The notes below the pieces were generated by a model. It was not told where the DNA came from. It made no database searches and saw only the letters and a list, made by a program, of their open reading frames with translations. A stretch of DNA of 60,672 nt, filler included, from Platydemus manokwari (taxonomy: Eukaryota): assembly GCA_037951405.1 (NCBI GenBank). It is 6 parts of 6 records of this genome, joined end to end, with 100 filler letters (N's around TTAATTAATTAA, not from the genome) between each part and the next. Parts side by side here need not be neighbours in the genome. Positions count along the whole stretch, not along the records: positions 18,454 to 27,717 come from JBBMOY011275428.1; 5 more parts are not named here. The stretch is one strand, 5' to 3'. Numbering within the stretch: the first letter of the stretch is position 1; each line of letters opens with the position of its first letter. Below, piece after piece: positions 20,576 to 20,758 of this stretch. The translations under genes were made by a program, and so were the position numbers.

Positions 20576-20633
20576 GTCCTATCTGTCTCTGGTTTGAGGC
20601 ACTGATGAGGCCCTTGGAAGGCCGAAATAGGAC
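20576..20633 (+). ncRNA. Type III hammerhead ribozyme with intact core; predicted cleavage after C20583 (AUC)
   Basis: Stem III GUCCUAU/AUAGGAC (7 bp); stem I UGUCUC-loop UGGUUU-GAGGCA; core CUGAUGA (20602-20608); stem II GGCC-CUUGGAA-GGCC; core GAAA (20624-20627). Confidence 0.9.
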
Positions 20634-20700
20634 ACTATCCGTATCATAAAACCACCATCGCCATCGCTGCAACTATCGTTCCTGAAATCCCTGAGAGATC

Positions 20701-20758
20701 GTTCTGTATATCTCTGAACCGGGATACTGATGAAGCCTATGGAGGGCCGAAATAAGAC
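20701..20758 (+). ncRNA. Second type III hammerhead ribozyme, partly degenerate; predicted cleavage after A20708 (GUA)
   Basis: Stem I UAUCUC-UGAACC-GGGAUA; CUGAUGA (20727-20733); stem II aGCCU-AUGGA-GGGCc with an A.C mismatch at the 10.1-11.1 pair; GAAA (20749-20752); stem III GUUcUGU/AUAaGAC with one mismatch and two G.U pairs. Confidence 0.8.

Follow-up and report, generated by a model that had tools for sequence, protein, structure and literature searches.

The sequence described here lies in the piece at positions 18454-27717 of the window, i.e., of the whole 60,672-nt stretch of DNA that was analysed. The piece has a GC content of 27% and contains a single recognisable gene, represented by the 3' end of the coding region for electron transfer flavoprotein-ubiquinone oxidoreductase (ETF-QO) on the minus strand (26065-26478; Pfam PF05187, E = 9e-46). 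This fragment comprises the last two exons, covers the 4Fe-4S domain and includes a 48-nt GT-AG intron at 26273-26226. Its best relatives are 64-71% identical to it (64-68% for animal proteins). Among the named relatives a bdelloid rotifer protein stands slightly ahead of those from fish, beetle, primates and a haptophyte, and in the protein atlas the fragment falls in with bacterial clusters only. The gene points to a eukaryotic host whose introns are short, probably an animal and an invertebrate.

The plus strand of the same piece also carries, at 18872-18948, 25254-25330 and 25561-25637, three units of about 90 nt that are related to one another (66-75% alike). In the middle unit a terminal stem accompanies a C box (TGATGA) and a D box (CTGA), and a weak match to Rfam snoZ122 was registered at 25232-25311 (25.9 bits, below the gathering threshold of 38). 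These units may constitute a C/D-box snoRNA-like repeat.

The features of main interest are two hammerhead ribozyme motifs located 5.3 kb past the end of the ETF-QO gene and on the opposite strand. Together with their surroundings they form a repeat copy at 20420-20798 (plus strand).

Two type III hammerhead motifs

The initial annotation had claimed two type III hammerheads on the same strand, and our analysis bears this out: HHR1 occupies 20576-20633 and HHR2 20701-20758, both on the plus strand. In each motif loops close helices I and II and helix III is open, which corresponds to type III topology. Both carry CUGAUGA, GAAA, U16.1 and an H17 other than G. The complete core and the stems of 6, 4 and 7 bp attributed earlier to HHR1 were found as described. 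Its stem III is formed by GUCCUAU/AUAGGAC (7 bp) with C20583 as H17, stem I by UGUCUC/GAGGCA (6 bp) closed by the loop UGGUUU, and the core CUGAUGA is followed by stem II (GGCC/GGCC, 4 bp, with the loop CUUGGAA) and then by GAAA. All the conserved hammerhead nucleotides are present in HHR1, and its minimum-energy fold (-19.9 kcal/mol) is exactly the canonical hammerhead.

HHR2 shares with HHR1 a gapless 58-nt layout, in which 42 of the 58 positions are identical in the present locus. The core of HHR2 is intact and H17 is A20708. Its stem I remains paired throughout; in comparison with HHR1, a double change has replaced one G-C pair by A-U, and two wobble changes affect one side only. In the alignment of these two sequences, 32 of the 34 pair cells hold standard pairs, compared with 35-44% when the partners are slid; covariation was judged from the two ribozymes and from the majority letter of the repeat family at each position. 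The terminal CC of loop 1 and the GG(A) of loop 2 are kept in both ribozymes in the family majority letters, and may pair with each other in a Watson-Crick contact of 2-3 bp, as an alternative to the contact between loop 1-U and loop 2-A suggested in the initial annotation.

How far such motifs could arise by chance was assessed with a type III descriptor that specifies the core, H17, A15.1-U16.1 and stems of at least 4, 3 and 4 bp. It retrieves HHR1; when the 9.3-kb piece was dinucleotide-shuffled 2000 times, only two of the shuffled versions gave a match, both strands considered. The bare CTGATGA...GAAA pattern occurs at two sites in total, namely HHR1 and HHR2, against an expectation of 0.25. 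A check with the Rfam Hammerhead_3 model (RF00008), proposed in the initial annotation, went the other way: HHR1 scored 20.6 bits, under the gathering threshold of 48.5, with an E-value of 1.5 for the piece and 0.042 for a 261-nt stretch, while HHR2 was not reported. The score is lost on the long loops 1 and 2, and neither HHR1 nor HHR2 would be annotated on the Rfam standard alone.

This low Rfam score could be taken to mean that the motif match is accidental or that the region is a coding exon on the minus strand, where a 69-aa open frame (20579-20788) covers the whole ribozyme pair. That frame matches nothing in Pfam and lacks homologues among 5.8 billion proteins. A second ribozyme with structure-preserving changes lies 125 nt away, and the sequence belongs to a high-copy family. 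A chance match or coding exon is so improbable in view of the shuffles, the high-copy family and the lack of homologues of the frame that we regard it as effectively refuted.

The repeat family and its parts

The supposition that the ribozymes belong to a multi-copy family has been confirmed by a search among contigs from the one sequencing run of the same organism that was found to contain the stretch (the kind of run is unrecorded; the contigs were treated as DNA). Aligned to 20400-20950 with a threshold of at least 80% likeness, 857 contigs matched about 20420-20798 at 80-99%. Summed contig depth amounts to 1900-6700 across most of 20419-20798 and falls to 26 and then to 11 from 20799 onward. 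The flank past 20799 is represented by a single contig that matches the window perfectly, so the depth of 11 can be taken as the single-copy level. Hundreds of genomic copies are probably present, summed contig depth being a rough measure of copy number only.

The right edge of the repeat is sharp, at about 20798, and colinear copies stop at 20784-20797. The left edge is less distinct. At 20400-20418 the depth is 548, about 50 times the single-copy value, and 31 of the 857 records overrun the ends of the aligned stretch, which together place this edge near 20400-20440. The longest records are colinear with the window from 20552 to 20750-20797 and have between 0 and 5 gaps; the two-ribozyme layout and the 125-nt spacing are therefore a property of the family. 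Records 1 and 4 (1145 and 1468 nt) run on into sequence unlike the window, and since such long contigs enter unrelated flanks, the copies must be dispersed. The amplified unit is the entire stretch of about 380 nt, which resembles a SINE in being a short, high-copy, dispersed element with a defined 3' end.

A sharp 3' edge combined with a fuzzy 5' edge, beyond which the depth at 20400-20418 is still about 50 times single-copy, would also suit the terminal part (3' untranslated region or terminal repeat) of a longer autonomous retrotransposon of the LINE, Penelope-like or LTR kind. On that view 5' truncation would have affected most copies, and the ribozymes would serve to process the transcripts. 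Ribozymes are indeed known from the terminal regions of Penelope-like elements and from the 5' ends of LINEs (PMC7936874; PMC7229834). However, Penelope-like ribozymes are minimal type I motifs and not canonical type III ones, no open reading frame in the 2 kb upstream matches Pfam, and the fraction of records passing the ends of the aligned stretch (31/857) is small. We consider this origin unlikely.

Three parts can be recognised in the unit besides the two ribozymes. The left arm (20420-20575, plus strand) is non-coding and contains two perfect 8-bp hairpins, 20440-20466 and 20511-20534, both inside the two most highly repeated blocks of the whole repeat. In the present copy about 12 nt of the left arm are missing near 20482-20488, and the sequence diverges from that of other copies around 20537-20552. 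Near 20482-20488 the present copy is without a further hairpin, of the CCCGTCGGG type, that other family members possess. No tRNA was found in the left arm by ARAGORN and no Rfam family matched it. The two ribozymes are separated by a spacer (20634-20700, plus strand), whose first 19 nt or so are conserved in the family and whose portion at 20653-20692 is the most variable, depth there dropping to 600-1700. The 3' tail (20759-20798, plus strand) follows HHR2; its end is a short repeat of the ATTC/ATTT type, and seven consecutive T (20799-20805) come directly after it in the flank.

The 200 nt at 20554-20753 are the GC-richest of the piece, with 47% against the background of 27%. Differences between copies mostly consist of G/C in one copy and A/T in another, so that the family still departs from the base composition of the genome.

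Variation is unevenly distributed over the unit. Among the 40 variant positions listed of a total of 121, 15 fall within the spacer portion 20653-20692 and 17 within the left arm, and those located in HHR1 are confined to its loops (20592, 20594, 20595, 20614). Loops, spacer and left arm thus hold the variable positions, and the stems and core have none, which applies to the listed 40 of the 121. As these listed high-frequency differences reflect changes of master copies and spare the stems and core, the comparison suggests that the ribozymes have been maintained while the remaining sequence drifted.

Conserved ribozymes next to a variable spacer could also be expected of a host small-RNA gene family or of a domesticated RNA-processing cassette that is not mobile. 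Such an interpretation would have to accommodate hundreds of decaying, dispersed copies, a G/C-to-A/T decay pattern typical of a mobile repeat, and damage to the present copy itself; it appears very improbable to us.

In the majority letters of the family, HHR1 and HHR2 are alike at 49 of 58 positions. Their remaining differences are constant throughout the family and include H17 (C in HHR1, A in HHR2), the helix I G-C/A-U pair with the two wobbles, and the loops. Judging by these letters, HHR1 and HHR2 are separate parts of the unit and not two products of one template.

The state of HHR2 in the present locus is different from that of the family. It had been proposed that HHR2 keeps its fold through compensatory changes, and this holds for the fully paired stem I, though not for the rest: A20734 faces C at the 10.1/11.1 pair, and stem III is weakened by one C.A mismatch and two G.U pairs. 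A non-hammerhead structure is the best fold of HHR2 here (-9.8, compared with -7.7 for the canonical one). The damage is located at 20703, 20706, 20734 and 20755. Unlike the present copy, 84-93% of the family depth has C, A, G and G at these respective positions, and each of the four majority letters restores a standard pair where the present copy has a mismatch or wobble. With the majority letters HHR2 acquires the 7-bp stem III GUCCUAU/AUAGGAC, like that of HHR1, and a G10.1-C11.1 pair, and the canonical hammerhead becomes its lowest-energy fold (-19.1 kcal/mol). The family majority letters, read as sequence, specify two intact ribozymes. HHR2 of the present locus is probably crippled and would cut poorly, leaving HHR1 as the likely sole ribozyme still able to cut here. 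The HHR1 loops of this copy also depart from the family majority.

We consider it probable that the locus represents an aged and partially decayed member of a family of non-coding interspersed repeats of about 380-400 nt, whose master copies have in their 3' half two distinct canonical type III hammerheads, located 125 nt apart on the same strand.

Predicted products and proposed mode of spread

In transcripts of intact copies each ribozyme would be expected to cut after its H17, as follows from established hammerhead chemistry. The predicted cuts are after C20583 in HHR1 and after A20708 in HHR2, and the distance of 125 nt between them given in the initial annotation is correct. Such a double cut would free an RNA of about 125 nt, corresponding to 20584-20708 (plus strand) in the present copy as derived from the motif positions, with a 5'-OH and a 2',3'-cyclic phosphate. 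Host tRNA ligase, which joins such RNA ends in retrozymes (PMC7229834; PMC4918200), could close it into a circle in the same way. Self-excision from the present copy is doubtful, because its HHR2 is probably crippled.

The fold of the predicted product is weaker than those of shuffled sequences (-24.3 versus -29.0, z = +1.3), and neither the whole unit, nor the left arm, nor the 125-nt product has a rod-like or unusually stable fold in comparison with shuffles. As the unit and the product are no more stable than shuffles, a viroid-like rod is not favoured.

The two motifs had been interpreted earlier as a tandem pair that defines a self-excising unit of 125 nt. This reading fails. Local alignment of HHR1 with HHR2 gives z = 13, and likeness is confined to the 58 nt of the ribozymes, since the left arm, spacer and tail compared with each other all give z < 1; the copies, moreover, are dispersed and about 380 nt long. 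A covariance model built from HHR1 and HHR2 has found no third hammerhead in the 9.3-kb piece. The mutual dissimilarity of the parts and the lack of a third copy indicate that the locus is neither a tandem array of 125-nt monomers nor equipped with long terminal repeats. Of the ribozyme-based mobile RNA family proposed on the same grounds, the ribozyme-bearing repeat family stands and the 125-nt tandem architecture does not.

The same observations bear on the possibility that the element is a classical retrozyme or satellite, with an RNA circle of about 125 nt as the transposition intermediate and the locus as part of a tandem array. Retrozymes of animals are built as short tandem units (PMC7229834), and a same-strand hammerhead pair at short fixed spacing would fit this scheme. 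So would the full pairing of the 5' strand of HHR2 stem III with the 3' strand of HHR1, and the canonical fold of the permuted HHR2/HHR1 hammerhead (-17.2 kcal/mol). Yet spacer, left arm and tail are dissimilar, the model of both ribozymes detects no further copy in 9.3 kb, the differences between HHR1 and HHR2 are constant, the dispersed copies have unique flanks, and the 125-nt product lacks a stable fold. We regard a classical retrozyme or satellite as quite improbable.

To return to the dispersed repeat, neither its left arm and tail nor its two distinct ribozymes would be restored from a 125-nt circle; for this reason the architecture suggests that reverse transcription takes the entire uncleaved unit as its template. 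As with SINEs, the copying would probably be done by a borrowed reverse transcriptase that starts from the sharply defined 3' end. Presumably ribozyme function matters to the spread of the family. No reverse transcriptase reading frame is located within 2 kb of the repeat, and the reading frames around it have no Pfam domain or protein-family match. Among marks of retrotransposition, no poly(A) and no tRNA-like head (ARAGORN) were found at the locus, and no flanking direct repeat (target-site duplication) of at least 8 nt was found with the left edge being approximate.

We tentatively speculate, with more doubt than confidence, that the family constitutes a third class of retrozyme-like element, namely an animal repeat that is dispersed and of SINE size, and in whose master copies two distinct hammerheads of canonical type III are maintained and set free an RNA of about 125 nt, possibly circular. 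To our knowledge, all viroid-like RNAs with hammerheads exceed this size. If the proposal is true, the RNA would also be smaller than any retrozyme in the papers cited here (170-1000 nt), and plant/viroid-style type III ribozymes would be extended to animal mobile DNA.

Comparison with known ribozyme-bearing elements

Insect type III motifs are said to have been the subject of a 2010 report by de la Pena and Garcia-Robles (RNA 16:1943). The suggestion that the present family is possibly undescribed has held: a literature text search with pieces of the ribozyme sequence, the scope of which did not take in that 2010 report, returned no paper, and no copy was found with a family-specific pattern in three public sequence collections, i.e., metagenomes, viral genomes and prokaryotic genomes. 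A looser family pattern had no match in viral contigs. In metagenomes it had three unrelated matches, one of them a prokaryote-style type III hammerhead and the others probably due to chance. The former is a compact, unrelated type III hammerhead at 146-173 on the minus strand of metagenome contig L001, located directly upstream of a ribosome binding site and ATG in prokaryotic or phage style.

The Sm-alpha repeat of Schistosoma carries one type I ribozyme, whereas two ribozymes are present in the repeat described here. Interspersed hammerhead repeats, known from Schistosoma (Sm-alpha), Aedes, Nematostella, Xenopus and Yarrowia, are likewise dispersed, a few hundred bases long and present in many copies (Perreault et al., 2011, PMC3088659); no matching sequence was found in the supplements of that paper. 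A tRNA-like head or polymerase III boxes were not detected in our repeat by ARAGORN and Rfam in the present copy, which is decayed and has left-arm deletions.

Type III hammerheads in invertebrate genomes have also been described in relation to delta-virus-like agents of insects (de la Pena et al., 2021, PMC7936874). In these hammerheads (termite, fly) helices I and II are long and contain an internal loop, a GCCR/YGGC pseudoknot is present and copies are few, in contrast to the short classical helices and high copy number found here. Insect type III motifs are also mentioned, without detail, in PMC7761336.

Metazoan non-LTR retrozymes are, like our repeat, small, low in GC, high-copy and non-coding, and occur in invertebrate-type genomes (Cervera and de la Pena, 2020, PMC7229834; Li et al., 2026, bioRxiv 10.64898/2026.07.22.740005). 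The RNA they release is 170-400 nt long, and the one predicted for our repeat would be similar or smaller. Their hammerheads are of type I with a weak helix III, whereas here two non-identical type III motifs have a strong 7-bp helix III. They also form true tandem repeats of 150-450 bp, in contrast to the single dispersed unit found here, the other parts of which are unrepeated.

Plant LTR retrozymes resemble the repeat more closely in their ribozymes, as they too are non-coding, non-autonomous, multi-copy elements with two canonical type III hammerheads on the same strand (Cervera et al., 2016, PMC4918200). The classical plant/viroid type III layout, with a helix I of 6 bp closed by a 6-nt loop and a helix II of 4 bp (PMC7936874), is shared by our repeat in both helices, loop 2 having 7 nt here and 4 nt there. 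The organisation of the elements differs. Plant hammerheads lie within direct long terminal repeats some 350 bp long; our repeat lacks these, the likeness between its two ribozyme regions ending at 58 nt. The predicted cuts are 125 nt apart here and 600-1000 nt apart in plant LTR retrozymes (PMC4918200), and GC content is 47% here versus more than 55% there. Plant LTR retrozymes possess a primer binding site, a polypurine tract and 4-bp target duplications. The spacer of our repeat contains no TGG, hence no standard tRNA primer site, and its longest purine run is 6 nt; a 4-bp target duplication was not seen at edges of which the left is approximate. Finally, the host is a plant in one case and probably an animal in the other.

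Hammerheads are at present divided by type, with type I assigned to the tandem retrozymes of animals and type III to viroid-like RNAs and the LTR retrozymes of plants (PMC7761336; PMC7229834). This division is broken by a dispersed, high-copy repeat that comes from a probable invertebrate and carries two classical type III ribozymes 125 nt apart. A 2020 review considered insects as a possible source of the plant type III elements, citing unpublished work (PMC7761336), and a characterised animal family would make this idea testable. The repeat also offers a simple system in which to study the role of ribozymes in non-autonomous repeats and the lower size limit of an RNA bounded by ribozymes. 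Overall, it is a new form of ribozyme-bearing repeat that belongs neither to the plant LTR retrozymes nor to the animal type I tandem retrozymes.
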